Assembly (NCBI RefSeq): GCF_001194135.2
Contig: NC_068998.1
Location: 49,728,376 to 49,792,375, forward strand
Source of the DNA: Octopus bimaculoides
Lineage: Eukaryota
Length of the DNA stretch: 64,000 nucleotides
Direction: 5' to 3'
The notes beneath the pieces are model-generated. The model was not told the origin of the DNA. It was given only the letters and a program-made list of their open reading frames with translations, and made no database searches. A program made the position numbers and the translations under genes. This document shows positions 6,388-59,900 of the stretch, in pieces (the stretch's first letter is position 1; each line of letters opens with the position of its first letter).

Positions 6388-9300
6388 GTAAGTACCCATA
6401 CTATAATCCCTCTTTATATTCCTTATATATATATATATATATATGCATAAATATGTAATGTATTTACATGTATATATACATATATATATATACGTTGATT
6501 TCTGCCAGTTAAAAATTTATGTTATCCTTACTGTGTTATGTAGGCTGCTCTCCTCCCTAGGTTCACCTTAAATAAGACGTTTAACAACACGTCTATCGTA
6601 CAACGATGACGTGTCTTGTGCATCGTAAATGGTCCCTCCCTCATGAGAAGTGATACTACAGAAAGAATGACAGCTAGGCTAAAAACCGCTCTATCTGGTT
6701 GTTTTATCTCCAGTTTATAGTTACGATGTGTGGAGGCGCAATGGCCCTGTGGTTAGGGCAGCGGACTCGCGGTTGTAGGATCGTGGTTTCGATTCCCAAA
6801 GCGGGCGTTGTGAGTGTTTATTGAGCGAAAACACCTAAAGATCCACGAGGCTCCGGCAGGGGATGGTGGCGAACCCTGCTGTATTCTTCCACCACAACTT
6901 TCTCTCACTCTTACTTCCTGTTTGTGTTGTGCCTGTAATTCAAAGGGTCAGCCTTGTCACACTGTGTCACACTGAATCTCCTCCGAGAACTACGCTAAGG
7001 GTACACGTGTCTGTGGAGTGCTCAGCCAATTGCACTTTAATTTCACGAGCAGGCTGTTCCGTTGATCGGATCAACTGGAACCCTCGACTCTATTGACTGT
7101 GAAACGATTTGCTCAAATCGATAAAACAGTGGAATAAGTTCACATTGTGCTCAATACATTTTTCCTGAAACGGGCGAAATGGGAAGATCATATTTACACT
7201 GCCTTGGTATACACGGAAACCATACTATGATTTAGAAACGACCCTTGGAGTAATACGAGTGTTAAATCGCTCAAGATGAATCGTGAACAGCTCTTTACAA
7301 ATGACTGACAAGAGAGTCGTGCAGTGAGAAATCATCCTCCCGAGTCGATGTAAAAAATGAAATTAGTATTGCGCCAACTCATACCAGAAGGCCAATTTCA
7401 GTTCCCATTAATGTTTTAAAAGGGTATTTGTCGCCAAATTTCACCATGACATTTAATACTATCTACACCAACAATTGGTTTTCTTATTTAAAATTCTTAT
7501 TGATTTTGAGACATCATCTAAAGTCGGTTCATTAGCCATATTATTGTTATACTTCCTATGCTTTGGATAATATCAATAACTACATTGAAAGACCTATTGA
7601 AAAGGTTTATATAGTGCTCAGCTCAACGTATGGACGGGATGTCAGTTAAGAGACATTTCTCCCCAACAGAATGAACTGGGGCTATTGCAGTTGTTCTGGG
7701 TCCACAAATGTCTTTAATGAAGTAGAAATTAAAACGTGTTTTGGGGGGTTTTATGATTTACAGTACATGTTGGGAATCCTACACTGGAAACACCACCATG
7801 AAATTACTCGCTTGAACCTAGTAACATATGCGCTCAGGCGCGTAAAAATAAAATCAAAGAACTAAACAGCTGCCAGATCCAAGACGTCAATGTATACGTG
7901 GGAGCCATTTTAATGCAATAGAGGCAATTGTTGAATCATGGAGGCCCTTCCTATCAAGGTACTGAGACCAGCTATAAACAACAGAACAGACGTACATACA
8001 CTAGTGTGGTTTCTATAGCATCACCAGTCCGTACATGACATCATTCTCTGCAGATACCTGAGCAACATTTCCTACTTCTCACTTTTTTTAACTGTCTTGA
8101 AGAAGAGTTACAGACCTGAAATATACAAACATAAGGTAAAATCACAACTTTGTTTAGAGCTTGTTTCTTTTTGTAGTTTATATCTTCACGCATTGTTCCG
8201 TCATTATCAAACAAATCACCAGTTCTACTGTGCGAGAATTCGCACAAAAGTACACATGTGTATAACTTTAAATTAAAATGTGCGTGTATGGACGTGCATG
8301 TCCTTATGCTTGTTTGCATATATAGCTACGTACAATTATTAGATTAGCTATATAGTCGTGTCGCACTTAAAATTGGGTGAGCAACAAATAATTCGTCGCA
8401 ATAATATATCCGCTCATTATTGACAACGTAATCTCGTTTGTTCTGCAAATTGTTGTTCCTTTGGACGTAATATTCTTCTACTTTTAGATGTGTCAATCAA
8501 TACCGCTTTTAAACTCTATACAATAATAAGCTGTTTTCACTCCAAATAACATTTCAGTTATCTTCAAAACTTAAGAGTGTGATGGAACACGGTGACGAAA
8601 ATATGGAACGTATTGAAAAATCTCCAAAGTTAGCGCAATAAGGTTTTCTTAGAATAACGTGAGCAATATGTTGTCATGTACTATCGCGTAAGAGCCTTAA
8701 TGTTTTACGTTTCACCGACGATGGTCGCTTTTTCTGTGAATGTCTTGTGCTATGGTTACAATGGACGTCAATTTTCTCCACATTGAATATTTCACTTTGA
8801 TTTACCAGTTCATCATAGGCATTGACAGACGATATATTACATTCTTCAAATAATTTACTGAACAATGTATTTTCCAAAAATGCTGCTTTTTGAATATTAT
8901 AAATATATATTTAAAAGATCTGATATATTTTACTTTTTGAATTTCAGGCGCCGACATGGGAATCATTTGTCCACCAATGGCAAGACGACACTGTGATATT
9001 CCTGTATCCTTTTTCAAAAGTCTCCTCCACGATGAGTCGTTTTGCGAGTATATATACTTTTGCTCTTCGACTGTTGACTTTTTACTCAATAACTAAGCAT
9101 ACACTTTCTAACAAACATCTCGGTTAGCCCTTCCTTCTCGGCCTTAATATCTGTCTCTGGGCCTATTTCTCCCAAGTTATATACATTAATCTATATTCCT
9201 CAAGAATTAATACATTATGAAGAATGCCGCCAAAGCCTTTTCAAAATGTGCCTATATATTATGTATGTGTGTATGTGTGTTTGTGTATTTCTGTCAATGT

Positions 9301-11905
9301 GCGTGCACATATATCTATCTACCTGTATTGCGTGAGTGTGTGCATGTGTGTGTGTGCGTAACTGTGACTCGACAACTTATCAAGCTGGTGGACAACCTAG
9401 CCATATTGATCATATTCTCATCAGAAAATGTGATGAATGGATTCTCAAAAGCGCAAATCTGTTCCCCAGTGAAAGATGCACTGCTCTGCATAGGTTAGAC
9501 ATTGACGACTTTAGAATATATGCTTTCAGGGGCATACCCATCTGGAAAAGAAAGATCTGGAAGCTTAAGGATCCTCTGGATAGCTACAGATTTAGAGGCG
9601 GCCTACTTGAATAATTTACCGAGAAGGAGGATAGGTTACAGACATGTCACTCGATGGATAATTGGACGTCTCTACGCGACAACATACTGAAGGCTAAGAC
9701 CAAGTTTGTGGCTAATCCAAAGTCTCAACCAGTCGTAGCGTGGCATGGCCGCGGAATATTGTAGGTGGAAGCACCATTAAAGCAAAGAATCTGACTTGGA
9801 AAGACTGGAAGGCTGTAATTCTCTGTACGATAAGACATATATAAAAAACATAGCATACACATTTATGAAGTAATTCACTGTGTGAGATGTCTGCTTAGAT
9901 ACAAAAAATGCTTTGAAAATATATGAAACACGTATGTGCTTAATTTTTCACAATTTTCTAAAATACGATTACTTTTCAGTGAATATCGAGCAAGCGCTAA
10001 ATGTTTGCATGCAATACACGACCATTGTAATATATATTTCATACATGCCTATCAGCATAAGTGTAAGGTAAGACAATATTTATATTGAACTCATTATTAG
10101 AAGTCATGCCTTGTGGATTAAATTCAATAGCAGATTTTTTTTTTAAAATTCATGTTGCTAATTCATATGGAATCATTGACAATAGGATGTATTCAATATT
10201 GTATGCAGTTATGGCAGCGAAAGCTGATTAGGTAATTATATTGAAACTGAAACGCAAGATTTCTCCCCGTTCATAAACAAATCGTTTCTAATCTCTCGTA
10301 GCTAACTTAATATTTCGATGCTTTTCTTCCAGGACATTGAAACATATCCAGGCTACCCCATGCAAAATATGGTAATTATTCGCATTAGTTGTAAAGATTT
10401 AATATCACCGACTTTGTATATTATTTCAAAGAAATGAACATTTTTTGAAGGAAGTTTTCACACATATCTTTTTAGATTGTGTAGATAACGATTTCATTAG
10501 AATCATTGTGAAAATCTTTTCAAATAATTTCAAGGAGAATTTTCTGGTGGGATATACGCCCTGACATGTTTCATCATAAAATTCAAAATGGGGTGTGTTT
10601 TAATGATAATTTAAACATGTATCTTTCAGATGGTGTGAATTATATCAGACGTTAACGTGAATAAAAAAAAACATGGATTGACATGTAACGTATCTCAGGT
10701 TTGTTTTCCCAATATTTTGAGAATAATTTGCATTTATGTTGAGGAAAAACTTTAATTGTGAGGTTAACGTGAGCCAAGCTACTTCTAGCATATTAAACGA
10801 CCTGGTAGAGGATGAACAAATATTTAGCTTATTAAGAGGAAAACGATAGAGGTAGAGAAGGAGATATTAAAGCTGCTATAAATAATTGAAAAAATACTAT
10901 TCAAAATTTAGTACAGCATTGTACCTTCCATTATTTAAACATTCTATTCAAAGAATTTCGGGAAACGGTAAAATAGCCCACATATACGTTTAGCCTAGTT
11001 GTAATGGAATCATCACAAAAACTAAGGATACAACGTTGAGCTCCACAAAATATCGGCCGTTTCAAATTTGTTGATATTAACTTCCAGTATAATCGCAATA
11101 ACACCATTTGCCAAAACGTAATTGCTCTATATGTTCTAGATGTACCTACATTGACGTTAAAAAGAGCTATCATATGTGAATTAACTTGCAGTGTTGAATT
11201 AACTTTAACTCCGTATATTAATTCTTTACTTTCAGAACTCTGTGCAACTGAACGCAAAACACATCAGAAATAATGTATGTAATATCATTACGACTAATGA
11301 TTTAGTATCACTGCGATTGCATATTAATGTACTTTCAATTAGCTAACACTGTTACTGAATTTCTACTAATTGATACAGTTAAAGCTCAATGGCTATACCA
11401 ATAGTGTTCGAGTCATTTCCAACAATTTAGGCCATTTCATATTAACAGAATACTTATAATCCTCATAGTGAATGTGATACGGCGTTATGTCCAGTATATA
11501 AAATATGGTTTCCAAACTGCTGTTTTAATTATAATGCCGCTTTTGAATAGTATAATATTGTTTGAGTAATATATCACTTGCATAGTTATAATACAGCTGC
11601 ATTAATATAATGGTAAATGAATCACTTTGAAATTTCAAGGTCAATGAAGAAAATAATACTGGTAATAGTATCAACAAATATTCCGAGAACTGGTAACTAT
11701 CATATAGTTACATTACCAAGACTATTTTTTTTTTTAGATATATTTAAGCACTAAGGCAGACACATTTACAGAAATTAACTCGGTACATTTGTATGAAAAT
11801 TTCAACTCTACGTGTATGTGAATAACGTGTCATTTTGTTCTATTTTTACAGGTCGGAATGGAATTGGCATTTGCTTCTGCAGTTGCTAATAAATTTATAT
11901 ATTAA
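6351..11905 (+). CDS. Gene B: join(6351..6387,8948..9047,9980..10067,10333..10371,11236..11274,11852..11905). MKIYIFFPFVLIGADMGIICPPMARRHCDIPVSFFKSLLHDESFCDEYRASAKCLHAIHDHCNIYFIHAYQHKCKDIETYPGYPMQNMNSVQLNAKHIRNNVGMELAFASAVANKFIY*
   Basis: Continuous ORF across canonical AG/GT exons; signal peptide, 6 Cys, stalk and hydrophobic C-terminus. Confidence 0.85.
6728..7090 (+). mobile_element. tRNA-derived SINE (family 2)
   Basis: A/B-box head GGAGGCGCAATGGCCCTGTGGTTAGGGCAGCGG...GGTTTCGATTCC; near-identical copy at 27540. Confidence 0.85.
8948..9047 (+). CDS. Gene B exon 2 (C-x7-C-x16-C)
   Basis: atttcag|GC GCC GAC...TTT TGC GA|gtatat; 100 nt. Confidence 0.85.
9340..9830 (+). mobile_element. Non-LTR retrotransposon 3' fragment
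   Basis: Degenerate coding-like sequence with multiple stops, in gene B intron 2. Confidence 0.45.
9980..10067 (+). CDS. Gene B exon 3
   Basis: acttttcag|T GAA...AAG TGT AAG|gtaaga; 88 nt. Confidence 0.85.
10333..10371 (+). CDS. Gene B stalk microexon DIETYPGYPMQNM
   Basis: cttttcttccag|39 nt|gtaatt. Confidence 0.65.
11236..11274 (+). CDS. Gene B stalk microexon NSVQLNAKHIRNN
   Basis: ctttactttcag|39 nt|gtatgt. Confidence 0.75.
11852..11905 (+). CDS. Gene B last exon VGMELAFASAVANKFIY*
   Basis: tatttttacag|GTC; AATAAA about 8 nt after the stop. Confidence 0.8.
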   Translation, partial: VGMELAFASAVANKFIY

Positions 11906-12677: not shown

Positions 12678-12714
12678 ATGAAAATTTATATCTACATTTC
12701 TTTACTCAGTGTTG
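12678..12714 (+). CDS. Gene C exon 1 (signal peptide)
   Basis: ATG AAA ATT TAT...GTT G|gtaagt. Confidence 0.85.
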
Positions 12715-15680
12715 GTAAGTTCCTATATTAGAACTCTGTAGAATTTCATAATCCAAAACTTTAGTTATCGATACCTCTTATTTTGTCCTTGTCTTTTTGT
12801 GTGATTCCACATACGGTCAAATATATACATGAAGAAATGGGAACAGGAAAGAAAAGAGAAATAAGGAAAAAAAAAGAACCAAAAAGCAGGGGTGTACTTT
12901 GATTGGGGAATGAAGAATGTCTGGTTATCGTTAAAATGGTCAAATATTTAATGGGAGAGAATAGAAGCGGANNNNNNNNNNNNNNNNNNNNNNNNNNNNN
13001 NNNNNNNNNNNNNNNNNNNNNNNNNNNNNNNNNNNNNNNNNNNNNNNNNNNNNNNNNNNNNNNNNNNNNNNNNNNNNNNNNNNNNNNNNNNNNNNNNNNN
13101 NNNNNNNNNNNNNNNNNNNNNNNNNNNNNNNNNNNNNNNNNNNNNNNNNNNNNNNNNNNNNAATAATATACATATGTATATAATAATGTTAAGGCAGCAA
13201 GGGCGAAAATAACCTAAGTCTAATGCTTAGCCGTTAAGAGAACGAGAACAGTGAAAAAGTTTACAATTAAAAAATATTGCAATACAAATGTATTACTTTC
13301 CAGTAAAATAAAGCCCCATAAGCATTTAGGCGATTGTACTGGTATTGATGAGGCAACATTTGAAATATTGTCTAGGTAAATGCAGCTGATGAAGACTTAT
13401 AAAATGTACGTTGACAAACGTATTTGAAGAGTCTGAAACCAAGGTACTGCATTATCCGATTCTGGGTGTCTATCTAATGTTCTTCCTAGAGGGAAGACAA
13501 TTTTTTCATGTTTGGTGCACTCACACATCTTTGCCAGTATATACGCAGTGAAGCTTTGTAATTGTATCAACTGCTATTTGCAGTAAATATTGGTGACTAG
13601 TATCACTATTCTGTATTTATATTTATACAATATATATATATATATATATACTTCAAAATAAGCATCGCTATCACACACTGTCATTTACTTCAATATCGTA
13701 CGAATATATGTCTGACAATGGTGAACTATCACATTTCTTAGAACCATTCGCAAATCGTAGTCGGAAATGGATTCCTGCAGCAGAAAAATGTGTCAAAGAG
13801 AACGCCATCCGATGTATTCAAACATGGAAACGTGAAAGTGATAATGATGTTCATAATGCTAGCTCTATATATTTTGTCAAATCCTTAACTTTATATTGAT
13901 ATGCTTAAGAATGATTGCGTTGAGCTCCCCACGTAAATATTCTTTACTACTCTTGGCACAAGGTCCGAAATTTTGGGGGATGGAGCCAGTCGATTATATC
14001 GAACTCAGTACGCAAATGGCATTTAATTTACCGACCACGAAAGAATGAAAGGAAAAGTCGATGTTGGTGAAATATGAACTCATAACCTAAAGACATACGA
14101 AATATCACTAAGCATTTCGCCCGGTGTGCTAACGTTTCTTATTTCTTTACTGCTCACAAGGGGCTACACATAGAAGGGACAAACAAGGACCGATAAACGT
14201 ATTAAGTCGATTACATCGACCTCAGTGCGTAACTGGTACTTATTTAATCGACCCCGAAAAGTTGAAAGGCAAAGTCGACCTCGGCGGAATTTGAACTCAG
14301 ACCGTAACGGCAGACGAAATACCGCTGAGCATTTCACCCGGCCAGCTCGCCGCCTATCCCCACGTATATAATGTATATAATGGAAATGCAGTATGTTTCC
14401 TGAGTGTAGTCAGTTTTGTATATTTAATAGATTATGATTGCAATTATTCGAATGGAAGCTAAAATGATAATTAATGAATAATTTATTGTATATATTGATA
14501 TCTATCAAAGCATGAAACGTTATTTTTATTATAACCAATCTGCATGAATAACATTTCACACGAACAGTCTGAAAAGGGGCACAAATGCTAAAGAAATATA
14601 AAGATACATTCTAATTTTGTACTCGCTATATTAGATAAGACACCTTACTCCATATTTTAGATGCTAATTTAATCGAGATTCTTAGAATAACAATTCCACA
14701 TATTTGTTTAATATTTTTTGCACAAAGGCCAGCAATTTCAGAAGATGAAGTGCAGTGATAAAATGCAACATCTGCTATCTGCTTCAGCACGCAGAACATA
14801 AAGACGGATGCGATTCCGCTAATATATTTTGCCGGGCGTGCTAAAAATTAAGCAAGGTAGCAGCGTTAACAATTCCAAATACCGATTCAATATTTGGGGC
14901 TAAGGCCAACAGTTTAGTGCGAGGTATTAATCGATTCCATTGATCCCAATGAACTACTGGTAAATATTTTATTGAACATGAATGGATGAAAAGCAAAATC
15001 CAACTCCGCAGAACATATAGTTTAAGGAAATGCTGACTGTCCAGATATTATAACATTTAAGGGTTACATTTTAGAAAATATTCTTCCGAAAATATGATTA
15101 AGAATGTACGTATAATATTCGATTCCAATTGGAATTTCAACACACATAAGGCAGCAAAGAATCAATGACAGTAAATATATCTGCCAATATATGAGTTTTG
15201 GCCAGAAATGAATATCTCAGTAAAGGGTGTTATTTAAAATATATGTTATTCAATATCATGCATATCCTTTGAAAATTAAATTTATTTTCGTTTTTAAGTT
15301 TCAGGTGCGATGGTTCGATATTGCCCAGATCAGGCAGAATTGTTATGCACTTTTCCCAAACATTTGTTTATAGATTTGAATCACGATAGTGAGTTTTGCA
15401 GGTATGTATCTTGGCACATCTACTATACCTTCTACACTCAATAATTAAGCATAGATTACTTTGCAATGTTCTTGGCTTTCTTTTCTTCTTCTGTCTATGT
15501 ATTAGACTCTCGGCGCATGTCTGCCTTTTTCTATCGTCATATTTATATCACCCATTTACTCGTACTGATTTCAAATTTTATCATGGTCGAGTTTGCCTCA
15601 CATCATTTCGGGGTCAATAAAATAAGTACCATGTGAGCAGTGGTGTCAATGCAATCGACTGCTTTCCCAGGACGGCAGAA

Positions 15681-15739
<59 letters not shown>

Positions 15740-16715
15740 GAGAGAGAGAGAGGTAGAGAGAGAGGTAGAGAGAGAGGTAGAGAGAGAGGTAGAGAGAGGT
15801 AGAGAGAGAGGGTGGGGAGAGAGAGAAATCGAAAGCAAATAGCTTTTGTTAAATTCCGTTCGCATCTCGGATAAAATATCACTGTATTTGAATTGAAATG
15901 TTCCTTCTGCACTACACAAATGAAAGTATCTAAACTTACATGACACAGCTTGATCAAACAACTAAAAATAGGTGATTTCCAACATTGTATACTAATACGT
16001 CTTGAGATGAATAAACCATGTATGTGATTAATATTTTCAGTAAAGTTTGATTTCTGATTGCCTTGCAGTAAATTTCAAAATAAGGCTGAATGTTTGATGA
16101 ATATGAAAGATTACTGTCCTGGAGTATACAAGAACTACTTTTATCATAAATGTATTGTAAGAAAACATTTTATTGTGATTATTAGCAATCTACTGTATTG
16201 TTTAATTATATTTATGTTACCTGTTCGTCATGTATACTATCGTACACTATATCTTACATTGACGCGCTTATTGAAATCATTTTATAAATTGCGCATTTAA
16301 AAGTCACTTTTATTTCTTCATTATACACGAAAATATACGTATGTGACGTATATTCAAGAGAATATACAATCTAATTTTGTAACATATCAAAGAGAAAATA
16401 GTCATTGTTTATAACAGAAGATGGAAAACTCTTTTCAGCCTATTTTTACGTACCTTTTAAAGATCAAAATTGTAGTCATTGATGCAGCATGCCAAAACAT
16501 ATTAAACTGTTGAAACATTCCTGTCACAACATGGGACCTTGAAGACTGCTAAAATGCAAGAAAGTGTACTAGTCTTTTGATATTTAATATTCAATATTTC
16601 ATCTATTCAATAAGACAATCAATACTTCATTTCATTTTACTATATATTCTATATCCTACATTAATATCATAAGAATATAAATAAAACATAAAAAAACAGA
16701 GTTGGAACTCTTTTG

Positions 16716-16780
<65 letters not shown>

Positions 16781-17810
16781 GAACGGCTGAGAGAAAGTGG
16801 GAGATAAAGAGAGGGAGAAATATTATGTAGAGTATCTTTTGGAATACTTCTATCTCAGGAATTAACGTCTTACTTTCAGAATTCCCATGAGTTAAAAAAA
16901 CTTGAAGCCTCAACCACCCGAAACATGGTCCGTAATGCCGTTACGTCTAATTATTTACTATCACAATACACGCTTACCTACAAAATATTTAAATTGCTAC
17001 ATTGGCAATAACTATTGCGTTGCAGTAGAGTGCCACACTATCAGTTGACTTACAGTAATTTTTATATTACGTAATTATCATTCTTTTAAAAGTAACACTA
17101 TTATTTTTTCAAAATCAATAGGATATAGTACAATACATGGGATACCTCCATGATATTTGCCCATCATTCAATGTAGGGCTATTTTCATTGCAATATCTCT
17201 TTTGCATTTATTTTATATTCTATGAATAATATATCACTTGCACAATAGCAATACAGTTCCATTATTATAATACTAAATAAGGCTGTGAACTGTTAGTATT
17301 GTTAGCGCGTGGGACGAAATTCGTAGCGGTATTTCGCCTACCGCTACGTCTTCAGTTCAAATTCCGCCGAGGTCGAGTTTGCTTTTTATCCTTTCGGCGT
17401 CGACAAATTAAGTACCAGTAAAACACTGGGTTGCTGTAATGGACTAGGCCACCTGCCCCAAATTTCAGGCAATGTGATTATAGTAAAACGAATTATTACA
17501 ATAGTAAATAATACTCTTGTAATTTGAATATGGTAGGACAGTGAAGTCACTATTACTTGTAACAAATATTATATAGAGTCTCATATAATTATTAAGATAA
17601 AATGAAAAATGTCTAATGAGACATCACTGTTATACACATGTTGATATATATTCAACCATTAATGCAGAAATATTTGTTGTAAAATAAGCAAAACAGTTTA
17701 CATGAATGTCTCTGAAAATGCAGTCGTTTGAATAACACGTCTTCTATTTCTTGTTACAGGTCAGAATGGATCTATTATTTTCTGCAGTACTCCTTTATAA
17801 ATTGATATAA
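12678..17810 (+). CDS. Gene C: join(12678..12714,15305..15401,16069..16156,16880..16927,17760..17810). MKIYIYISLLSVGAMVRYCPDQAELLCTFPKHLFIDLNHDSEFCSKFQNKAECLMNMKDYCPGVYKNYFYHKCINSHELKKLEASTTRNMVRMDLLFSAVLLYKLI*
   Basis: Open spliced frame, canonical sites, family Cys spacing C-x7-C-x16-C-x8-C-x7-C-x11-C. Confidence 0.85.
13945..14355 (-). mobile_element. Two tandem family-1 SINE copies
   Basis: Reverse complement of the 3105 element (gtcgacctcggcggaatttgaactcag). Confidence 0.8.
15305..15401 (+). CDS. Gene C exon 2
   Basis: tttcag|GT GCG ATG...TTT TGC AG|gtatgt; 97 nt. Confidence 0.85.
15678..15825. repeat. (AG)n / (AGAGAGAGGT)n compound microsatellite
   Basis: Direct observation; source of the SL-repeat ORFs. 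Confidence 0.95.
16069..16156 (+). CDS. Gene C exon 3
   Basis: ccttgcag|T AAA...AAA TGT ATT|gtaaga; 88 nt; lies within track ORF 16058..16300. Confidence 0.85.
16880..16927 (+). CDS. Gene C stalk exon NSHELKKLEASTTRNM
   Basis: tactttcag|48 nt|gtccgt; downstream intron homologous to A and B stalk-exon introns. Confidence 0.7.
17290..17490 (+). mobile_element. Family-1 SINE
   Basis: gttcaaattccgccgaggtcg core. Confidence 0.75.
17760..17810 (+). CDS. Gene C last exon VRMDLLFSAVLLYKLI*
   Basis: ttgttacag|GTC; AATAAA at and after the stop. Confidence 0.8.
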   Translation, partial: VRMDLLFSAVLLYKLI

Positions 17811-20991: not shown

Positions 20992-21051
20992 TTATAAATA
21001 TCTCATTAAGTAACTTGAAGCTGCAATAGACAAGAGAAGTTCCGTCATGCC
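20992..21051 (-). CDS. Gene D last exon GMTELLLSIAASSYLMRYL*
   Basis: tttttctttacag|GGC; AATAAA overlaps the stop. Confidence 0.8.
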   Translation of the reverse strand, partial: GMTELLLSIAASSYLMRYL

Positions 21052-23944
21052 CTGTAAAGAAAAATAAATACAAACACTAATGAAACAAATTTTTCGGTGA
21101 AAGTTTAGCTGAAAGTTGATTATTTAATTTGCTCGATATGTCTCAGGATTTACCAGCCTTGTTACAGATATAATTGATTGTGTATAACACTGATATCTAG
21201 TTACTATTTTCGAAAGATATTAATGCTGGACAAAATGACCTCAGTCGGTAAAGACGGACATACTGCTTTTGGCGTTTTGTCCGTATTTACAATTTGAGTT
21301 ACAATTTCACAGTGGTCAACTTTGCATTCCGTCCAACTGATGTCGATGAAATAAATACGCTTTGAACACTGGGAGTCGATGTAATCGATATACTTATCTA
21401 CCGAACTTGCCGCCCTTGTGTCAAAATTTGAAATCAATAAATTTAATGAACTTCTGTATTTACGTTCTGTTACAATTATATAATGATATTCTACTGATAC
21501 AATTATAACTCTGTTGTGTATTATGATATTATAACGTAGTGTCGGCACGTCTGCGAAATAAAAAAATAACCTATTGGTGCATAACATTTAGAACTTTCTT
21601 AACTGTGAATATTGCATAAATATTCCTTCATTCATACTTCTCTGTCCCTGAATATAGCTATAGCATTCGTGAAGTGGATATATTCTAAAACGTAATTCAT
21701 GAAATTGCGAATGTCACATGGATATAATTTTTCTCGAATTCTACTTAAATATCACAAAACGTGTTAATGTAGTATTTCTATATTCACATTGACGATGATT
21801 TCCGGTGACATAATACAATGTTATTGGGAAGATATTAAATTTTGGTGATGTAATTTGGCATAATGTATAGATTTTACTCACCTTTTTCTGGGCAGTTCCA
21901 CCGTTTTGACTCTGAAAGCAAGTGGTAAAAGAGTATATATATATATATATACGTGCATATATGACATAAAATCATGACAATTTTTTCTATTTCTCTGCAA
22001 AACAAGCTTAAAAGATTTTCTTACTAGGAATGTATACATCACTTGACCAATTATGGATGAAAAGCGGCTATGCATTTCATATACTTGACACATCCAGTAA
22101 TTTAAGAGAAGTGGAGCTCCTTCTTCACATTTTATGTGTATTTTACTCTTTATGTAATATAGTTGAAATTGATTTTGCTAACTATTCAGACATGAGATGA
22201 AATTTCCGCACATACATTTCTACATAGTATTATCAGCATATAGACTTCTACTAATCCCTCCTTCCATGCTTTAGACTCAAAGAGACCGAAGGCACGTATT
22301 CGAAGAACAGTGAAAGATGCAGCTACATCAAATGCCGTAGAACATAAATCTTTCATTTATTAAAAGTTTCTTTCCCCACGGAGGATGTTTAAGAACCACA
22401 AAATAGAATTTATTAACAATATCTACGTGCGAATGGGAAAAACTATATTAAAAGGAATACTCTAATTTGGATATGCCCTTAAAAAAACGGCCCACTTAGA
22501 ATCTAGAAGTATGCCGACCGACGTATTTACATGTTTCTGCTTCAACCAGCACCGCAAAAACCAAGTTATACACTGCGGGTGCGTAGATATTTCTCAAATC
22601 GCATCAATCACTGGATTGTATCATGTAATAAGAATCGCATTTCAAGTGACAAGCATTATTAACTATTTCCAAGCTCCGACTTGATGAGATACGAAATTAA
22701 ATTAGGAAATCTCTGACGTTCTATAAATTTCGTTCATTCTTTTCCTCCCTAGGTTTACTATAGAAATAGTTGAGTTTTACACAACAATGTAGGCAGGTCC
22801 AGACAATTGCCTACAAGAGTAGCTAATGATAAAATAAAGCATCAAAATGAAATACGGCAAAATACTGAACGACAAGTTATTACTTTAGACAACAATATAT
22901 AAATAATGAATATATCTTACAGCACACGCTTTGAGAAGGTAGTTATCATAAAATTTAGCACAGTCGTGAGTTGTATCATAAAAACACTTAGAATCATTCT
23001 TAAGTATACTGCAAAACAATCGAAATACAGGAATTATACACAAAATTGAACACGTATGGGGTGCATGATAGATATTTCGAAACATGTTTAGGAAAGGCAG
23101 TTACAACAAACATAGAATATTTTAATGTTTGTATAAAATCTGTTTCAATATGATAAGCATATCTGACAACATTTGTTATTCTGTATTGAAGGTGACGGCT
23201 GTAATTAGATTTTAAACTCATCACATGAGTAAACGCTGCTTGTTACAGCTGACAAGTTTACAGAATGCAGCCGAGATCTGCACACAGTTTGGAGGCTCAC
23301 TATAGAAAAGTGCTGGGTTACACTGGGCGAACACTATGCAGAAACATGTTAAAAGCTTCTATCTTTAGCGATTATCTGTTTCTTGTCTCCACAAGAATCA
23401 AGGTAAAACTAGCGGCATCATGTACAACCACTGAGTTTCATTTGGGCAGATGGTCACGAAAGAGTAATCTGCACAGGTTTTAGGTGTGTTCGGTGTGAGA
23501 CTTCTATGTTAAAGGCCAGAATATTTTCATCAGACCAGTGCACCAATCTAGATGTTCTACCTCGTAACCAACTTCTTATCTCACATGGGCACGAAAACTG
23601 TCACTCCCCCTACCTGCCAAGTAGATCTTGCCCCCTGTGGTATTTAGTTGTTCTCAAGATGGATTTTAAATGATAAAGGAGACCTGAAAAGGCTCATGGA
23701 CACTGTCAATTTCTAGTGCTCCCGTGGAGAATTCACGCAGAGTTTGGATAAAAATGTATTACTTATTTTGTAGTTTCTATCATTTTAAAAACTTCTTTTA
23801 AATTTAGGTTACATCTATTTTATAGATCTAACAAATGAGTTTGAGTATGAAATATCGATTTAAAAGATGAATGATAATATCACACACGCATATACGCACA
23901 AAAAATGCACGCGCGCACATATATATGCATAAATGTATGCATAC

Positions 23945-24010
<66 letters not shown>

Positions 24011-24038
24011 CATCATTATAAAAATAATAATAATAATA

Positions 24039-24071
<33 letters not shown>

Positions 24072-25100
24072 TTATGTTTGACTTTTGTTTTGACTATTAT
24101 TATTTCGTAGATCTATTAGAATCATTTTATTAAGTAATATGAGACTAAAGATTTATATAATAACATCTCTTATAATCAGGTTAAATTATATTCCATTATA
24201 ATCTAATTCTAAAGTAGCTATAATTAACTTAAATTGGTAACCGTTCTNNNNNNNNNNNNNNNNNNNNNNNNNNNNNNNNNNNNNNNNNNNNNNNNNNNNN
24301 NNNNNNNNNNNNNNNNNNNNNNNNNNNNNNNNNNNNNNNNNNNNNNNNNNNNNNNNNNNNNNNNNNNNNNNNNNNNNNNNNNNNNNNNNNNNNNNNNNNN
24401 NNNNNNNNNNNNNNNNNNNNNNNNNNNNNNNNNNNNNNNNNNTATATATATATGTATGTATATATGTCTATATATATGTGTTGTGTATTGCTATCTTTAT
24501 ATATGCATATGCATCTATGTATACATGTATGAGCATATGTCTGTAGGTATATTATACATACATATGAGTGAGGGTGTATGTGTGTGTATGATAAACATTT
24601 GTATTCTTGTGATAAAATAATTGTAGTTTAGGAAAAGAGTAATTATGATAATGATATTTAAATGATAAGGAAGTTTTAAAGTAATGCTATTTTATATTGA
24701 ATGATTTTAAATATAATTATATTGACTTATATCAAATGCTTAACTAGAGCGTATTCTATATATTATATATTTCTATTGTCATAATCTGAAAGCATGGAAT
24801 TATAAACATATTGATTTAAAGAGAATTAATTCCCTAGAAAATAAGATATTCGTATATACTATTATGATATTATCTTTTAGAAACTTTCTTTGTGATATAA
24901 ACTACGTAATTTTCAATTATTGCAATGCTAAGTATGTACAAAGACATTTATTGTAAACGATATTCGGCCGAAATGTTATGGGGTTTTAGAAATTGAAAAG
25001 CAAACTATGTTAAAGTGTTACCTAGTGTAATTGGACTTTAGGTCACAGAACATTCACTAAAGTAGCACCTAAATATGTATGTATAGGCATACGTGTACAG

Positions 25101-25141
<41 letters not shown>

Positions 25142-39776: not shown

Positions 39777-39829
<53 letters not shown>

Positions 39830-41277: not shown

Positions 41278-41334
<57 letters not shown>

Positions 41335-42340
41335 NNNNNNNNNNNNNNNNNNNNNNNNNNNNNNNNNNNNNNNNNNNNNNNNNNNNNNNNNNNNNNNNNN
41401 NNNNNNNNNNNNNNNNNNNNNNNNNNNNNNNNNNNNNNNNNNNNNNNNNNNNNNNNNNNNNNNNNNNNNNNNNNNNNNNNNNNNNNNNNNNNNNNNNNNN
41501 NNNNNNNNNNNNNNNNNNNNNNNNNNNNNNNNNNNNNNNNNNNNNNNNNNNNNNNNNNNNNNNNNNNNNNNNNNNNNNNNNNNNNNNNNNNNNNNNNNNN
41601 NNNNNNNNNNNNNNNNNNNNNNNNNNNNNNNNNNNNNNNNNNNNNNNNNNNNNNNNNNNNNNNNNNNNNNNNNNNNNNNNNNNNNNNNNNNNNNNNNNNN
41701 NNNNNNNNNNNNNNNNNNNNNNNNNNNNNNNNNNNNNNNNNNNNNNNNNNNNNNNNNNNNNNNNNNNNNNNNNNNNNNNNNNNNNNNNNNNNNNNNNNNN
41801 NNNNNNNNNNNNNNNNNNNNNNNNNNNNNNNNNNNNNNNNNNNNNNNNNNNNNNNNNNNNNNNNNNNNNNNNNNNNNNNNNNNNNNNNNNNNNNNNNNNN
41901 NNNNNNNNNNNNNNNNNNNNNNNNNNNNNNNNNNNNNNNNNNNNNNNNNNNNNNNNNNNNATATATATATATGTGCCCATGTACGGGTATATGTACGTTA
42001 TATACATGATTAATTTTTTATTTCAGTTTCATGGCGGAGCAGATATAAACAGAAATACGGTAGGTAGTGCCAATGTAAAATATTGTTAGTATTTCACCAA
42101 TATGGTAGAGCAAAGTAGGTGTAGTTTTGAAACGATAAGTCTTGGTTATCAACGAATAAACATCTCAATATCTAATAAGTGCAACTTGAGTAGTATTTTC
42201 CTTCAGAATTTTCACGTATACCATTCGTAATATTATGGCAGTAAATGCGTTGCTAACAAAAAAAAAAGAGTTTAAATAACTTTGAAATATGTCACTAATG
42301 TACCTGAAAAATAAGATATATACTGAAATATGTATTTGAT

Positions 42341-42403
<63 letters not shown>

Positions 42404-42760
42404 ATAGTAGTAGTAAAACGTCTACTATATCAGTTGTTATGAATAATGCACGCTTATATCAAGGCATCACAATTGCCGTAACATATAAAAGCAAATTCTA
42501 TTTAGGGAATTTCAACATGACACATCGTAAAAAGCTAATACCGTTTAGCAATATTTGTACATATATTTATATGGATGTATTTAGCTTTACTCGTGGTGTA
42601 TAATGCCTTTAACACTTCTAGGGACGACTTCGCATGTCGAATCCCTGTTTTCATCGTTATAACAAAAGATCTGCGTTGCGTGTTATATAAACAATGCCGT
42701 TTCGTACAACACTGCTTCTGTCACTAGTATTTAATTTATCCTTCTCTTTCTTTCTTTCTT

Positions 42761-42799
<39 letters not shown>

Positions 42800-43445
42800 C
42801 TCTATCTCTTTCATCACCCTCCTTACCACCGGCTCCTCATCCATCTTCTCAATGTGACCAAAGCAACTCAAAATTCGTCTATCCATTTTGGTTGTTTGTT
42901 TATCTCTTAATCCGCCTCGCCTTCCGCATCTCCTCATTCGTCATCCTGTCCATCGCATCACACCAACCACAGCCCTCAAACACCTCATCTCAAGCACATC
43001 CAGACGCCTCCTTTCCCCCTCTCTGAGCCATATAATATTGTCGGCACAACCTCTTTTCGTTTTTCATACTAAACCTTTCATCTCAGAGCTTATAGATGAT
43101 AGGAAAGCTTGGAGAGTGCTTGTGGACGGATGAGAGAATGTGATGTTGCTCAAAGCGGTACGGAACCAGCATGGTCCAGAGGGGTCAAATTAGAATATGC
43201 AGTTGGGTCCCGGTGGTGATATTGGGTTTTGCGGTCTATACCGTGACGCAAGCATAGGACAGGACACGCATCTATGAACTTGGAAATTAATGGAATGCCT
43301 GGTGTGTATCTTGTGCGTAGCCCCTCCTAAAAATGGGGAAAAGGCCCGAGTACATGTATGTATCTGTATGCATATATATATATAAAAGTATTAGGTGAAT
43401 TGTTAATGATATTGCTGTTATTGCTGTGGATTCTATTATCAATAT

Positions 43446-43504
<59 letters not shown>

Positions 43505-43505
43505 G

Positions 43506-43565
<60 letters not shown>

Positions 43566-43791
43566 ATAATAGCGATACCAATAACGATAATGCGATTACT
43601 GTTTTTTATAATGACGTAATTCTTCCATTCTTCTATTTAATGTTACGTAAGAAACAGCTACAATGAGCTGACGATTATCCATCACGTGTTATATAATATA
43701 TCATAAATAACATTTCAAATCCTCTTTGCAGGTCAGGCTGGAAAGATTATTGGCTTTTGCGTTTGTCGCTCAATTAATTATAACGAAATAA
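37028..43791 (+). CDS. Gene F: join(37028..37064,38422..38521,39952..40039,42027..42059,43732..43791). [105 protein letters not shown]
   Basis: Open spliced frame with canonical sites. Gaps at 40095-40536 and 41335-41960 could hide extra stalk exons. Confidence 0.85.
38422..38521 (+). CDS. Gene F exon 2
   Basis: atttctag|GT GTT GCG...TTT TGC AG|gtatat; 100 nt. Confidence 0.85.
38590..38900 (+). mobile_element. Family-1 SINE fragments
   Basis: ttgtcttttatcccttcgggttcgataaaataagtacc core. Confidence 0.65.
39952..40039 (+). CDS. Gene F exon 3
   Basis: ttgtctttcag|A CGA...AAA TGT GTG|gtaaga; 88 nt. Confidence 0.85.
42027..42059 (+). CDS. Gene F stalk microexon [11 protein letters not shown]
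   Basis: tttttatttcag|33 nt|gtaggt; shares the RN motif of the A, B and C stalk exons. Confidence 0.75.
42600..43360 (+). mobile_element. RTE-like non-LTR retrotransposon fragments with (CT)n
   Basis: Minus-strand [14 protein letters not shown] motif typical of LINE C-termini; LINE-like 3' end. Confidence 0.45.
43447..43563. repeat. (CTA)n microsatellite
   Basis: Direct observation. Confidence 0.95.
43732..43791 (+). CDS. Gene F last exon [19 protein letters not shown]
   Basis: ctctttgcag|GTC; AATAAA overlaps the stop. Confidence 0.8.
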   Translation, partial: VRLERLLAFAFVAQLIITK

Positions 43792-49665: not shown

Positions 49666-51362
49666 CAACACCGAAAAATACATTAGGAATGAGAAACTAG
49701 GTTCGAAATTTCCCCAAGTCACCTAATGAAGCCTGGAGGGTATATCAGCCGAAACGTCGCGTTAACAATAAACAAGATGAGGACAAACATCCGTCAAATG
49801 AGGGCATTCCTAAGCACGTGATCATAGTTTGCTTTCAGTTCCTTTATTAATCCAGTTTATATAAATGACTTATGCATTTAACTTGTTGTTACATGCCTAC
49901 TTCAATTTTATTAAATGTTTTACTGCAGGCTTTATATATAATTTGTAAATAAACCAAAGTTTTAAATTCTTAGGTGTTCCGTGGTATGGAGATTGCCTTA
50001 ACCAGCATAACAGTCGTTGTAATGAAAACATTATTGAAAATACGTGGTATAACTTTTGCAAGTATATATAAATATACATTTATCATCATTTCATTAGACA
50101 ATTCTGTAATACAATTAATATTTAAACATTCCGTCATTATAAAAGTTCATATATACCGAAATTTTTATCGGTAAAAAATTGGAAAATTGTATCCATTTCA
50201 AAATTTGATATATGTCAGTATGTTCATATTTATATTGTGCGTTGTTTTTCCGATACGCTAATGCACATTTATATTTTTAATAAATGTATTGTTCATTGCT
50301 AAATTAAAAGGCAAAACACGGTTTGCTTGGCATTTGATGCATGTCACAAGATACAAAGTTTTTATGTACACTAAAAATATTTCTTTGTATGTATTTCATA
50401 TCACAATACCTAAATAACATTTCATTAGTTAGATATTTCCAGTAAATGCATCAGTTATTCACAGGTTAGTGCTCAACGAAAATATAGCCTGTGCGTATGT
50501 TATACGATTTAAAACAATAATGATAATTCGTTTAATAGGGCCTAGTTTTCTTTTATTTCCGTTGTTCTGCATGACGGTGCAGTAAAGCACTAGAATTGAA
50601 ATCACTTGATTCCCACTGCGCAGCACCTTAGGCATGTACGTTTTGCTATAGACTTACATCACCTAATGCATTATGAGTGAATCTGGTGGATGAGAATTGG
50701 TCATTAGCCAGAATATATAGTATCCAGTATATATACATACATATCTATGTTGTTGCGTCTATGAACCCTCACTCCAATATTTGAAAATGGAGGTTGATTT
50801 GTGCAGGCCACTTTAACCTGTCAGTTTAATAAGAACTGTCAATAACACAAGCACAAAACATTAAAGTGAGTAACTATGAGACTGGACCAGCTAAAATTCC
50901 AGGTGACTGCTAATAATAGCAGCGAGTAAAGTAGAAGAGATATAGGGAACGAGAAAACCCTATTAACTAGATTCGAATTTTAACATTATTTCATTTCACA
51001 TTTTACAAAATATTTAATATCATACCAGAAATTTGAATATTCAGGTTTCAATTCCTAAGTGCTTTCTTTTTCTTACAGAATTTACACGACTTCTAAAAAG
51101 TGCTTTAATAACCTGTCAAAATATTGTCTTGGATTCTACGATTTCTATCATAAACACAAGTGTTTGGTAAGATATTAGAATTAATTTTGATCCATTCATA
51201 CCAACAGTTTCTCAGTTAACAAACGATACAATGCTTAGATTTGTTAAAACATGTGACAAGGACATTGCTCGATAGTAACCGTTAAAACAAATCTTCCTGT
51301 ATTCATACTTTGTCACTAGCCTGTTATTTCCTGAAACTAGATCGAAGTAAATAGTAGCAATT

Positions 51363-51399
<37 letters not shown>

Positions 51400-52200
51400 C
51401 ATATATACATGTATGTGTGAGAGTGTGTGTATATAAATTCACGTTTTCTTTTTCAGTACAATGACCAAAGTAACAGTTTTGAAAACAATGCTGAGGTACG
51501 TTATGTTATTACTAATCATCTGTGTGTCACAACTCGACATCCAGTGATAGAGCCTCGATTTCATTGTAAGATATACATGCTGTTAATGTATACATACATG
51601 TATATATATACTGTATATGTATATGGTGCGTGTCTATGTGTGTGGATGTAAGATGAGTATTTAGGTGAGTAGTATTGCAAGGTATGGTTAAAGATTCTTC
51701 TAGACATATACATACTTGTGCCGTATGTATATATATCTATACATATACACATATACATATATGTATGTATATATAGAATGTATATATAAAATGCGGCGTC
51801 CTTTAAGTTACCTTAAGAGTCGATTAAAACGACTGATGCAGCTTAACTTTTATCTGAATAAATATGTAATTTTCGGTGAAATACTAGTCATATCGAAGTT
51901 AATATGTGCATTGGAGAAGCTGTGTTACTCTCAAATTAAATAATCTGAAATAGAAATTTTATATTAATTTCTTGTAAGACCCTAAGTCAACTATAGCCAA
52001 CACGACAACACTGTGATACAGTTATATTAACGTTACTTATATAAATTCTTATTTAGATATTAAATATACTGTAACATGTATTGTCTTCAAGCACTTAATG
52101 TACACATTTGAATGAACATATTTCTGGTCTTCTTTTGCAGGTCCATTTTCAGTCCGTATATGTTACTGCAATTATGGTGATGTTAAGCAATGTTATATGA
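46785..52200 (+). pseudogene. Gene G pseudogene: psi-exon 1 46785..46825 (MKTSVLFTSLLIF-G after removing one extra A; donor gtaagt is now aaaagt), psi-exon 2 47771..47865 (LALYD*GQTFKVHSTPSSRFSDINYSEEEIK), psi-exon 3 50302..50386 (IKRQNTVCLAFDACHKIQSFYVH*KYFF), stalk exon 51457..51495 (YNDQSNSFENNAE), last exon 52141..52200 (VHFQSVYVTAIMVMLSNVI*)
   Basis: Collinear homologs of every exon type in the correct order. Frameshift, stops, lost Cys and lost splice sites in the first three exons. Promoter motif at 46701. Confidence 0.7.
49537..49800 (+). mobile_element. SINE with tRNA-like head, (TAA)n spacer and Penelope-like 3' end
   Basis: ggcgtagtggttaagagcgcgggctac...gatcgattcc head; ctaatgaagcctgg...cagccgaaac tail. 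Confidence 0.65.
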
Positions 52201-56655: not shown

Positions 56656-56692
56656 ATGAAATATTACTTTGTCTTAATTCTACTCATGGTTG
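56656..56692 (+). CDS. Gene H exon 1 (signal peptide)
   Basis: ATG AAA TAT TAC...GTT G|gtaagt. Confidence 0.85.
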
Positions 56693-56900
56693 GTAAGTCA
56701 TTATAGCAAACGATTCTGTTTTCATTTTTTTTTTCTTTTGCTAATTATTAGAATTAAATCTGTTCGCGTGGTTGAAACATTAACTTTTTTCTTCCTCTCT
56801 CTTTTGAAATCTTTCTTTTACTCTTTTACTACATCTCTCTCGTTCTATTTGGTGAAGATTTTTTGAGTTATCTTACCAATTATTTTTGTTGGTAGATAAT

Positions 56901-56937
<37 letters not shown>

Positions 56938-59900
56938 CTGTAACATATGTGACAATTATTGGGTACCCATGATAAAACTCCGAGTTACGGATGCCGGGGT
57001 GGAAACCCACGCCGCTATCTCTTCAGTTGTTTGGCCATTGAAAATTGCTATGGAAATGACGGGTCATTTATATATATATGTTATTGCGCTTTACGTAATT
57101 TGGATCCGGTGCTGAAAGGTGATGTTTCAACAAATCTTTTAGGGAATATAATTTCCAAAGATGTCAATTTGATGAATTGCAGCGATTTTAATAATTGACA
57201 ATATCGTAGTGTAAAAATAGTTTGGACATCTCTTGTGAAACTAAAGGTATCTATACGACAAATTCCTGTTTATCACTATACTATCAGTTATATAACTATT
57301 ACCGACGTGCAGGAATACCATATTTCGTTATCGAACGATAATATACTAGAAAGTATATTAAATGCTTTATAAGATAACACTGTTATTTATTCTGTTGGCA
57401 GTGATATTAAATCAATTGTTTATGTTATCTCTAGAGTTTTCTGCAGATTATTGCTAGTACTAATTTTCTTTACGATGTTTTGTATTCGAGACACCTGATG
57501 TAAAGAACAAAATGCAAATCTGTAGAGATAACCTTAACAAAATAATTAATGCTCATTAAGTTTATATTTGTTTGCCATGTGCATGATATAAACATATTGC
57601 ATATTTTGGTGGTAAATTTAAATAACGGATTATATCACTGAGAAAATCCTGTGGTTTATCTACCACGATTGATGTTATCTGATGCATTTGAAATAATCAC
57701 ATTTCCTATATAACACATCTATCAACAATGATGTGAGATGATGTTTATGAGTAGTTTTAAAAGCATATTCCTGAATTGGAGTAGGAAAAAGCATTCCATT
57801 TTTGTTTCCATTTGTGTTTTCTCTGTGTTTTCTGAAAGGTACAACGATTTCATACAAAAATTCAGAAAGACATTAGAGAATGTTCACTGCATAAGAATAT
57901 TTACTTTTAATTCTGTGTTCTGTTCGTAAAGCTTTCTCTCAGAGAACTACATATAAACAATGCTCACCCACACACACAAAACGGATTATATCACGGACAA
58001 AAAGATCCTGTGGTTTATCTACACACACATTTATACATGCAGACATAGGAACATACACACACACAGACACACACGTATACAAATAAAGAAAACACATAAA
58101 TGTTATTTAATATGCCACACAAATGCAGTAACTAAGGTATTCCTTTACTATAATTCACCGTATATCTATTGCATGGATTATTCAATGCCATATCTCGAAA
58201 TCACAAGCTATAATAATGTTTCAAATGTTTAGGTGATGTGATGTCCACCGATTGTATTTATTTAGCAGCCGAGACATGCCCTAAAGCCAATGTGAATTTT
58301 ACAATAATAAACCCTGAATTCTGCACGTATGTATGGCATCACATATACTTTTACCTCAGATATTATTATATTGTAATTACTTGATATCAAACCTATGCCT
58401 AACATTCCTTGCAGTCTTACACTTCTTCAAATAAATGTACTGAACTTCGTGAATGCAATTGACAGTAGTAATTAAGAGTTATCTTACATATGGATAAAAT
58501 AGTTAATAAATGCGATTTTTATCATAGTTTGAAGTTATTGTTAATAAATGTATTCCTGAATTGGTGTATGGAAAAGCATTCTGCTATGGCTTTTGTAAGT
58601 GTTCTACCTGTTATATGAAAAGTATAGTGACTTTCTCCATATATATTAAAATACTGTTGGTACTCCCGTTTATTTTATCCTGAATATTAAAGAATGTTTA
58701 TTCCGGCAAAATATTTATTATTGATACTGTATTTTGCATGCTATACATATTTGATAACTATTTTTTTGTCTTCCAGTGAGTACCTGAAACATCATAAATG
58801 TCTTCATGAAATACAGAATTCATGCGTTGATTTCTATGGCTACTTATATTACAATATATGTGTCGCGGTAGGAGCAATATTTCAATGAATCAAATATACA
58901 TAGGTTATCTGTTAAAATGAAACTTATTAAATTAAATTCGTTGATAGCATTCATTTTATATACATACATATATGTACGTGCGCGTGTGTGTGTGTATGCG
59001 CGTATATGTTTATATACGGTGTTTCCCTGGAAATGAGACCTACCATGATTTTTCAGGCTGTTTTTAATATAAGTACTACCCCGAAAATAAGACCTAGTCA
59101 GAAACGCATCAGCTTGTTAGCAAGAGCATGTGATGTTTGCAAAATAAGCGAACTACCGCAGCTTGGCTAAAGTCTGCGCTAAGCACGTATGCACGGAGTT
59201 GATTCCCTTGTACCCCAGGCAAGATAAATGTAAAGAGAGTCATTCTGTGGAGTACAAGAAAGGAATTGTGGAAGAGTCTCATAACAAAAATCTTACGGCA
59301 TTCTCTAAGGAGAAGATGTTGGATCTCCGAATGTTTAGAAAATAGCGAGAAGAGTATAATAATCTGTTAGGGGTGCGTCGCCAATTTACATTCCCTCCAC
59401 TGGCTACGAAAGTGCACGAGTTACATATATTTTGGCAGTTCGTCTCGATGGAAGTAAAACTCCTCCTTTAATCATCACCAAAGGCAAGAAGGATAGAATT
59501 GAAGGCGTTTCAGGCATCTGTGTTCTGGAAACTGAAAAGGCATGGTGTACACAGGCAGTTTTAAGGAAATGGATCGATTTCATGCTGCCATTGATTTTGC
59601 GAGGAAGCGAAAGAGGTATGATAGTTTGGGATTCAGCCAGCACGACCGCGCAAAAGACATGAAGAATTTCCTTGCAGAAAGGAGAATAGATCAAATCATG
59701 ATTCCCGCAGGAATGACTGTTTATCTCCAGACTCTTAATATTGCAATAAATAAACCATTCAAGGACAACTTACGCATGGAAATTAATGACTACATTGAAA
59801 GCAGAATAGTGAGAAATGAGAGTGGAAATTTTGTGAAGCCCAGACTACAAGAGATCGTGACTTGGGTGACAAATTCATGGAACAAAATCACAGACAGCTG

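Follow-up and report, generated by a model that had tools for sequence, protein, structure and literature searches.

The 64,000-nucleotide stretch of DNA analysed here (the window) lies at about 49.73-49.79 Mb of Octopus bimaculoides chromosome CM046618.1 and belongs to a large cluster, restricted to Octopus, of five-exon genes multiplied by tandem duplication; these code for small secreted, probably lipid-anchored proteins of roughly 105 residues built around a six-cysteine core. The DNA is AT-rich, of animal type, and carries 12 runs of N. Pattern and tblastn searches in six frames brought out two kinds of open segment, with three Cys each, that repeat every 6-12 kb, and six pairs of these exons, spread over both strands, join to a six-Cys core of 59-63 residues.

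A tandem array of five-exon genes

Profile searches of the six-frame translation of the window returned exactly 6 first-half core exons (E 1e-14 to 1e-18) and exactly 7 second-half core exons (E 1e-12 to 1e-15); no convincing further core exon was found there, the next-best matches having E > 0.1. The units present are six genes with full cores (A, B, C, G and H on the plus strand, M on the minus strand), one gene truncated at the left end of the window (Z) and one remnant (X), with the following coordinates in the window:

282..5177, plus strand: gene Z, 3' part only (core exon 2 282-369, micro-exon 4573-4611, tail 5124-5177)
6351..11905, plus strand: gene A, 105 aa (signal exon 6351-6387, core exon 1 8948-9047, core exon 2 9980-10067, micro-exon 11236-11274, tail with stop 11852-11905)
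12678..17810, plus strand: gene B, 106 aa including the micro-exon (exons 12678-12714, 15305-15401, 16069-16156, micro-exon 16880-16927, 17760-17810)
20992..28703, minus strand: gene M, 104 aa (exons 28667-28703, 25585-25684, 22921-23008, micro-exon 21882-21911, tail 20992-21051)
32904..33302, plus strand: remnant X (signal-type exon 32904-32940, tail-type exon 33243-33302)
37028..43791, plus strand: gene C, 105 aa (exons 37028-37064, 38422-38521, 39952-40039, 42027-42059, 43732-43791)
49974..52200, plus strand: gene G (core exons 49974-50061 and 51079-51166, micro-exon 51457-51495, tail 52141-52200; signal exon not in the read sequence)
56656..62364, plus strand: gene H (exons 56656-56692, 58233-58326, 58777-58867, 61317-61343, 62287-62364)

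A first-pass annotation of this DNA had counted eight cores, lettered A-H; this number reduces to six full cores, one half core (Z) and one coreless remnant (X). Its letters cannot be mapped onto the units found, and the motifs HD..FC and CL, which it had reported from several cores, occur together only in units A and B. It had placed the feature between 8948, the first base of gene A core exon 1, and 58867, the last base of gene H core exon 2.

The gene plan consists of a signal peptide exon, two core exons with three Cys each, a polar micro-exon and a hydrophobic tail exon, with conserved splice phases, and the five-exon models have intact open reading frames (ORFs) of 104-110 codons. The signal exon (37 nt, ATGAA[AT]AT...G/GTAAG, the slash marking the splice junction) stands about 1.4-3 kb upstream of the first core half and codes for M-K/N plus ten hydrophobic residues; its motif occurs 5 times vs. 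0.05 expected by chance, and its phase-1 end fits the entry phase of core exon 1. Core exon 1 has as its acceptor an AG with G[TC] behind it, and its donor, GTAT[AG]T, stands two bases past its third Cys. For core exon 2 the acceptor reads ..[CT]AG, plus one base, and the donor GTAAGA (GTAGGA in H) comes right behind the codon next to its third Cys; these borders therefore give a phase-2 join into a single core of 59-63 residues. The micro-exons (27-48 nt) are polar, rich in N, S and G, and homologous in every unit. The tail exon begins in phase 0 about 1.5 kb downstream of the second core half, codes for 16-25 mostly hydrophobic residues and then stops, with AATAAA at or just past the stop codon. 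A single long multi-domain gene is ruled out by the signal exon, stop codon and AATAAA of each unit and by the one unit on the opposite strand. MAFFT once placed the G first half on the second halves, as though the core exons were repeats of each other, but hhalign gave this relation only 2.4%, and it was rejected.

Database records agree with several of the models. UniProt A0A0L8HFY8_OCTBM (P0001) matches the core, micro-exon (SQNGGTAQKK) and tail of gene M exactly, and it was these ten residues that revealed the 30-nt micro-exon between core and tail of this gene, at which the public chromosome record likewise calls a 104-aa gene. Gene C is identical to RefSeq LOC128249865 (P0002) and has the same 6764-nt span on the public record. 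Gene H is identical to RefSeq LOC128249936 (P0003), which begins at an upstream ATG (18 extra residues), and is collinear with O. vulgaris; since O. vulgaris has ATA where the signal-exon ATG of gene H stands (L001 23207-23283 vs. window 56656-56692), the true start of this gene may lie upstream in both species. Database protein P0005 corresponds to gene B without its micro-exon (which has a weak donor, GTCCGT) and with the acceptor of core exon 1 placed 6 nt upstream. In gene A the signal exon is the conserved ATGAAAAT...G/GTAAG, the splice phases are 1/2/0/0 and the 318-nt ORF is intact. All four exons of gene G are collinear with the O. vulgaris locus L001.

The two incomplete units are of different kinds. 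In gene Z, the signal exon and core exon 1 lie beyond the left window edge; its core exon 2 (profile match E=1e-13, acceptor TTTGCAG, donor GTAAGA) has an in-frame ORF, and its tail exon and micro-exon can be aligned to those of A, B and M. Remnant X comprises a signal-type exon (MKIFIIIAFLIS) and, 300 bp away, a tail-type exon (VTRECFFVIAVNIKFLRHM, followed by a stop and then AATAAA), the phases of which do not join; both core exons and the micro-exon are missing, and X probably arose by deletion or through a collapse in the assembly. Diverged second copies of the micro-exon, with splice-like borders, stand in the same intron of genes Z (2982-3020) and A (10333-10371); they encode HSPNKQAQSRKQV and DIETYPGYPMQNM and may be alternative or dead exons.

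None of the N runs is touched by a coding exon, all gaps falling in introns (three in gene M, two in the gene C intron after core exon 2) or between genes, so that continuity of the reading frame across gaps is not at issue, with the exception of the gene G signal exon. In the gap-free O. vulgaris locus this exon (L001:8194) maps to the window gap 48444-49114; it lies 62 nt beyond the end of the alignment, which falls exactly at that gap. In the public chromosome record, coordinates and gene span agree with those of the window; this record is the same assembly and provides no independent check of the gaps.

The six-cysteine core and the range of the family

The core follows the pattern C-x7-C-x12-16-C-x8-C-x7-C-x11-C, and pairwise identity between the cores of the window paralogs is 22-35%. 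Among the six window cores, the only columns that never vary are one Gly and the six Cys; across 33 full-length relatives, and likewise across 53 copies of the domain taken from three Octopus species, this is true of the six Cys alone. Thus the first-pass view of an invariant Cys scaffold carrying otherwise free-running sequence is borne out across a much larger sample. The helical character that it had ascribed to the segments between the Cys holds as a prediction, AlphaFold2 models being all-helical; the fold check that it had proposed gave this helical prediction and no match to a PDB fold, and the disulfide pairing cannot be read from the models.

When 1.84 billion representative proteins were searched exhaustively with the family profile, 44 matches came out at E<=0.001; a word-indexed protein search had given just 1-6 relatives. 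Twenty of the 44 matches were looked up. All but one come from O. bimaculoides, O. vulgaris or O. sinensis and bear the label 'uncharacterized' or 'hypothetical', and most are encoded on the same 55.6-Mb chromosome under neighbouring LOC numbers. The exception (P0038, WP_234446203.1) is an 82-residue partial 'Campylobacter fetus' protein from a contig of 322 bp; it clearly belongs to the family, and its source is almost certainly animal DNA that contaminated a bacterial assembly. A typical member has about 100 residues and the same architecture, and in some the domain occurs as a tandem of 2-8. No account of this family was found in the literature searched. Overall, the gene family is real, unnamed and restricted to Octopus; its five-exon plan is conserved, its six-Cys scaffold is fixed and its surface evolves fast.

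C-terminal region and probable membrane anchoring

In every protein, the 30-36 residues past the last Cys consist of a cluster of small residues, a polar spacer and a terminal hydrophobic run. The clusters (N/S/G/A/D) in the linkers read NS, SQNGG, GGAD, SSS and NDQSNS, and the terminal runs (13-19 residues, Kyte-Doolittle 1.6-2.8) are followed by the stop codon and the poly(A) signal. This succession is the usual layout of a glycosylphosphatidylinositol (GPI) attachment signal, and by this sequence criterion the proteins are probably lipid (GPI)-anchored. RefSeq isoforms occur with and without the micro-exon, and one may speculate that skipping it alters anchoring.

Two other readings of the C-terminus were weighed. 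The hydrophobic run could be a transmembrane anchor of single-pass or tail-type proteins lacking a cytoplasmic domain, to which its length of 13-19 residues and, in H, the short polar end HDYNLWTQ behind it would be suited; most tails, however, end within 3 residues of the run and are too short and too weakly hydrophobic to span a bilayer, which makes this very unlikely. The proteins could instead be secreted effector peptides (toxin, antimicrobial or pheromone) from conotoxin-like genes, with the hydrophobic C-terminus removed as a propeptide. The conserved signal and tail around a hypervariable Cys-framework core, the tandem expansion of the genes and the annotated isoforms without micro-exon or tail are what such genes would display, and conotoxin superfamilies do share the conserved signal and flanks, the fixed Cys, the tandem expansion and a remainder that changes as fast as neutral sequence or faster. 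We consider this origin quite unlikely, given that N/S/G clusters ahead of a terminal hydrophobic run have the usual GPI signal layout, that there is no conserved dibasic processing site ahead of the tail, that toxin-family matches among 34 members are single and at chance level, and that the multi-domain relatives (P0019, P0041), with up to eight repeats and one terminal tail, fit surface proteins better. Conotoxins differ further in showing no sequence kinship with the Octopus domain, which is larger and predicted to be helical, ends in an anchor-type C-terminus and has multi-domain relatives. The broader impression recorded in the first-pass annotation, of a recognition- or toxin-type repertoire, is matched by the layout of the proteins, in which signal and tail are conserved and the part between them is hypervariable.

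Evolutionary rate of the core

Among the window paralogs, synonymous differences are saturated (pS 0.5-0.9) and the ratio of nonsynonymous to synonymous divergence (dN/dS) of 0.3-0.9 is uninformative on positive selection because of this saturation. We therefore compared the genes with their counterparts at O. vulgaris loci, where the window segment 49.3-62.7 kb is collinear with L001, core exons are of equal length and alignments are gapless. Gene G shares 32 of 59 residues with its ortholog (dN 0.29, dS 0.545, dN/dS 0.53) and gene H 45 of 62 (dN 0.153, dS 0.197, dN/dS 0.77); gene M, set against the nearer of two O. vulgaris copies, gives dN 0.226, dS 0.116 and dN/dS 1.95, which is not significant (p=0.46). 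Pooled over G, H and M (dN 0.22, dS 0.256), dN/dS is 0.86 and not different from 1, in a sample of about 100 synonymous sites that is too small to separate diversifying selection from near-complete freedom outside the Cys.

Introns served as a second yardstick, fixed-length flank alignments between the species having been left out as spoiled by insertions and deletions. Between O. bimaculoides and O. vulgaris, divergence of the intron that separates the core exons is 0.147 in H and 0.19 in G, and core dN (0.15-0.29) is at or above this intron divergence (0.15-0.19); for gene G, 47 of 176 core-exon sites are changed vs. 168 of 1000 in the intron (p=0.003). The tail exon, by comparison, is 93% conserved between the species (G and H) vs. 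73-88% for the core. Thus the core evolves at about the neutral rate or above and the tail is under constraint. The fast change of the core fits positive selection or near-complete relaxation outside the Cys; the diversifying selection suggested in the first-pass annotation is thus plausible, yet unproven.

The same annotation had associated dN/dS below 1 with saturated dS with simply old duplicates, and this combination is found among the paralogs, the orthologs giving 0.53, 0.77 and 1.95. Old duplicates under weak constraint, in which the Cys are kept since misfolded secreted proteins are harmful, the rest drifts neutrally with no diversified function and some copies are becoming pseudogenes, would agree with the paralog values, with a pooled ortholog ratio indistinguishable from 1, with the loss of both core exons from remnant X, with the lack of annotation for gene A and with the two copies of M in O. 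vulgaris vs. one here. We regard this account as unlikely: all six genes have intact ORFs, canonical splice sites and conserved phases, their orthologs are kept and collinear in O. vulgaris, conservation of the tail exon exceeds the intron level, and the core exons of G outpace their intron, which drift alone does not predict.

The two O. vulgaris copies of gene M stand about 20 kb apart (11076-12834 and 31317-33893 of locus L002, OX597831.1 16484376-16529906), and dN is higher (0.226) in the copy whose dS is lower (0.116). They lie at least about 120 kb from the G and H orthologs on the same record; the distance from M to G in the window is about 21 kb.

Comparison with known domains

No Pfam family is matched above threshold by the six window proteins. 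RGM_N (PF06535), a domain of repulsive guidance molecules (RGMs), is weakly matched, in one register, by three of the six, and by 11 of 34 family members (best E=0.0074), whereas the 21 other families listed are each matched by one member. In the reciprocal search, a profile of 53 domain copies run against PDB sequences returned RGMB first (E=0.015) and RGMA at E=0.28, both marginal, and hhalign of the family with RGMA plus RGMB (sequences verified against PDB chains) gave a sub-threshold probability of 59% over 31 columns that take in D-x2-[FY]C-x8-C-x7-C. A 9-sequence profile had found no match among PDB sequences, RGM emerging only with the 53-copy profile. The spacing Cys3-x8-Cys4-x7-Cys5 is the same in the family core and RGM_N, both of which have six Cys, and the residue matching RGMB Leu103, four past Cys5, is aromatic or hydrophobic in the family. 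RGMs bind BMP/GDF ligands by way of helix 3 and the linker between helices 2 and 3. Matches of the 53-copy profile to calcitonin-receptor ectodomains among PDB sequences (E 0.06-1) had no other support and were treated as chance.

In RGMs, the N-terminal domain (RGM_ND) is a three-helix bundle with three disulfides that binds the fingers of BMP2 and GDF5, and RGMs are GPI-linked (PMC7354924). The likeness extends to several features: RGM_ND (PDB 4UHY, 4UI0, 4UI1) and the Octopus core are both about 60-70 residues long, with six Cys and a helical structure (predicted here); L and an aromatic residue stand at the same places between Cys3 and Cys4; and RGMs are GPI-anchored, as the C-terminus of the Octopus proteins suggests for these too. 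There are differences too. The outer Cys spacings are not the same, and the Octopus proteins lack the RGD motif, the von Willebrand D-like C-terminal domain and the GDPH autocleavage site; those of the window are 104-110 aa long and consist of a signal, one domain, a linker and a tail, and across the family the domain stands alone or in tandems of 2-8; and the family comprises dozens of fast-evolving paralogs vs. 1-3 conserved RGM genes per animal genome. We rate true homology of the core to RGM_N as slightly more likely than not: the core is most likely a distant, free-standing relative of this domain, which is the closest, still unproven, relative of the family and its best structural and functional lead.

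Other small disulfide-rich systems fared less well. The first-pass annotation had noted a loose resemblance to the Aplysia pheromone attractin and had named GFRalpha/GAS1 and DUF19 helical domains for comparison. Attractin is likewise small, helical, six-Cys and molluscan, and the hint rested on a shared C-x7-C segment; it differs in Cys spacing and has no anchor signal, and the 53-copy profile gives hhalign a probability of 0.3% against PDB 1T50 (sequence confirmed) and no attractin match at E<=10 among PDB sequences. Neither the GDNF domain of GFRalpha/GAS1 nor DUF19 has a Pfam match at E<=1 in the 34 members or at E<=10 in the six window proteins. Kinship with any of these is refuted at the sequence level by the hhalign, PDB-sequence and Pfam searches, and we give it almost no credence. 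Ly6/uPAR proteins resemble the family in being small and disulfide-rich, with a phase-1 signal exon, a two-exon domain, a GPI signal and clustered gene families. They have 8-10 Cys, a beta-rich three-finger fold and a C-terminal CCxxxxCN motif; this candidate was rejected for the Octopus proteins, which have six Cys, predicted helices, no CCxxxxCN motif and no Ly6/uPAR Pfam match among the 34 members.

Repeats and assembly features of the array

Mobile-element sequences are scattered through the array. The gene H intron after core exon 2 contains frame-shifted fragments of a DDE_1 transposase (59432-59970; Pfam E=8e-7 and 0.003), and since window positions 59016-60314 have no O. vulgaris counterpart, this insertion is specific to the O. 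bimaculoides lineage. A 319-bp repeat, probably an interspersed element, occurs at 92.8% identity upstream of genes A (6730-7048) and M (27543-27860), with a weaker third copy near 30884-30975. Introns and spacers also hold many copies, in both orientations, of a repeat of about 150-200 bp resembling a short interspersed nuclear element (3087-3326, 13988-14342, 17263-17440, 26083-26251, 33409-33569 and 38634-38733). Downstream of gene H, the open segment 62797-63057 matches RVT_1 (E=5e-5; 23.5 bits, below the 29.6 cut-off) and is probably a fragment of a long interspersed nuclear element. Two 186-bp stretches, 100% identical (54773-54958 and 55223-55408), stand on either side of the N gap 55026-55222, as if one contig end had been placed twice in an assembly artefact, before and after the gap.

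Discussion

The reading that we favour on balance, by a modest degree of confidence, combines these results: a tandem family whose members would display a disulfide-locked, helical, GPI-anchored and RGM_N-like domain that has diversified between copies. Each protein would enter the endoplasmic reticulum via its signal peptide, and its six Cys would form three disulfides locking a small helical bundle. A GPI anchor would then take the place of the hydrophobic tail, joined to a small residue of the linker coded by the micro-exon, so that the domain is presented on the outer face of the cell membrane, and isoforms skipping the micro-exon may escape anchoring. Because disulfides hold the fold, surface residues would be free to change, and change at the neutral rate or faster between species would produce a diversified repertoire of binding surfaces. 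Binding of TGF-beta/BMP-family or other secreted ligands via the aromatic third helix is a speculation by analogy with RGM.

Several findings weigh against this combined reading. The RGM_N scores of the window proteins (10.5-15.5 bits, E 0.02-0.8) are below the 24.2-bit gathering cut-off. The one relative above this cut-off, P0019, reaches 37.9 bits, a value summed over four near-identical repeats and inflated by this repetition, as is also indicated by the spurious family NPR2 reaching its cut-off in the same protein. The similarity is confined to the middle half of the RGM_N domain, and the outer Cys spacings differ (Cys1-2 x7 here vs. x4 in RGMB; Cys5-6 x11 vs. about x21). AlphaFold2 runs with 9 and 34 sequences have modest confidence (mean pLDDT 67 and 71), and Foldseek comparison of the models with the PDB returned 3 meaningless matches and then none, with no match to RGM. 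Some tails are only moderately hydrophobic (gene A), and the product of gene A is absent from the annotated proteins searched.

In its boldest form, which we think unlikely, the proposal would be that in octopuses the ligand-binding N-terminal module of RGM was made into a stand-alone, lipid-anchored protein and multiplied into dozens of rapidly diversifying genes on one chromosome. The resulting cell-surface repertoire might tune signalling by BMP/GDF-type or other cues, or serve as a label of cell identity, in neural tissue or suckers, and would parallel the octopus protocadherin expansion.

If the favoured reading is true, Octopus genomes would hold a lineage-specific, cell-displayed family of several dozen genes, annotated so far only as 'uncharacterized', in which a fixed three-disulfide scaffold is paired with surfaces that evolve as fast as neutral sequence or faster. 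Repertoires of this kind are usually a sign of recognition systems, whether immune, gamete, chemosensory or neuronal. Should the hypervariability reflect relaxed constraint, this would be an ordinary fast-evolving orphan cluster. Should the link to RGM_ND be true, it would provide a testable hypothesis of TGF-beta-family ligand binding, and the family would represent a rare case of a signalling co-receptor module freed from its parent protein and then expanded.

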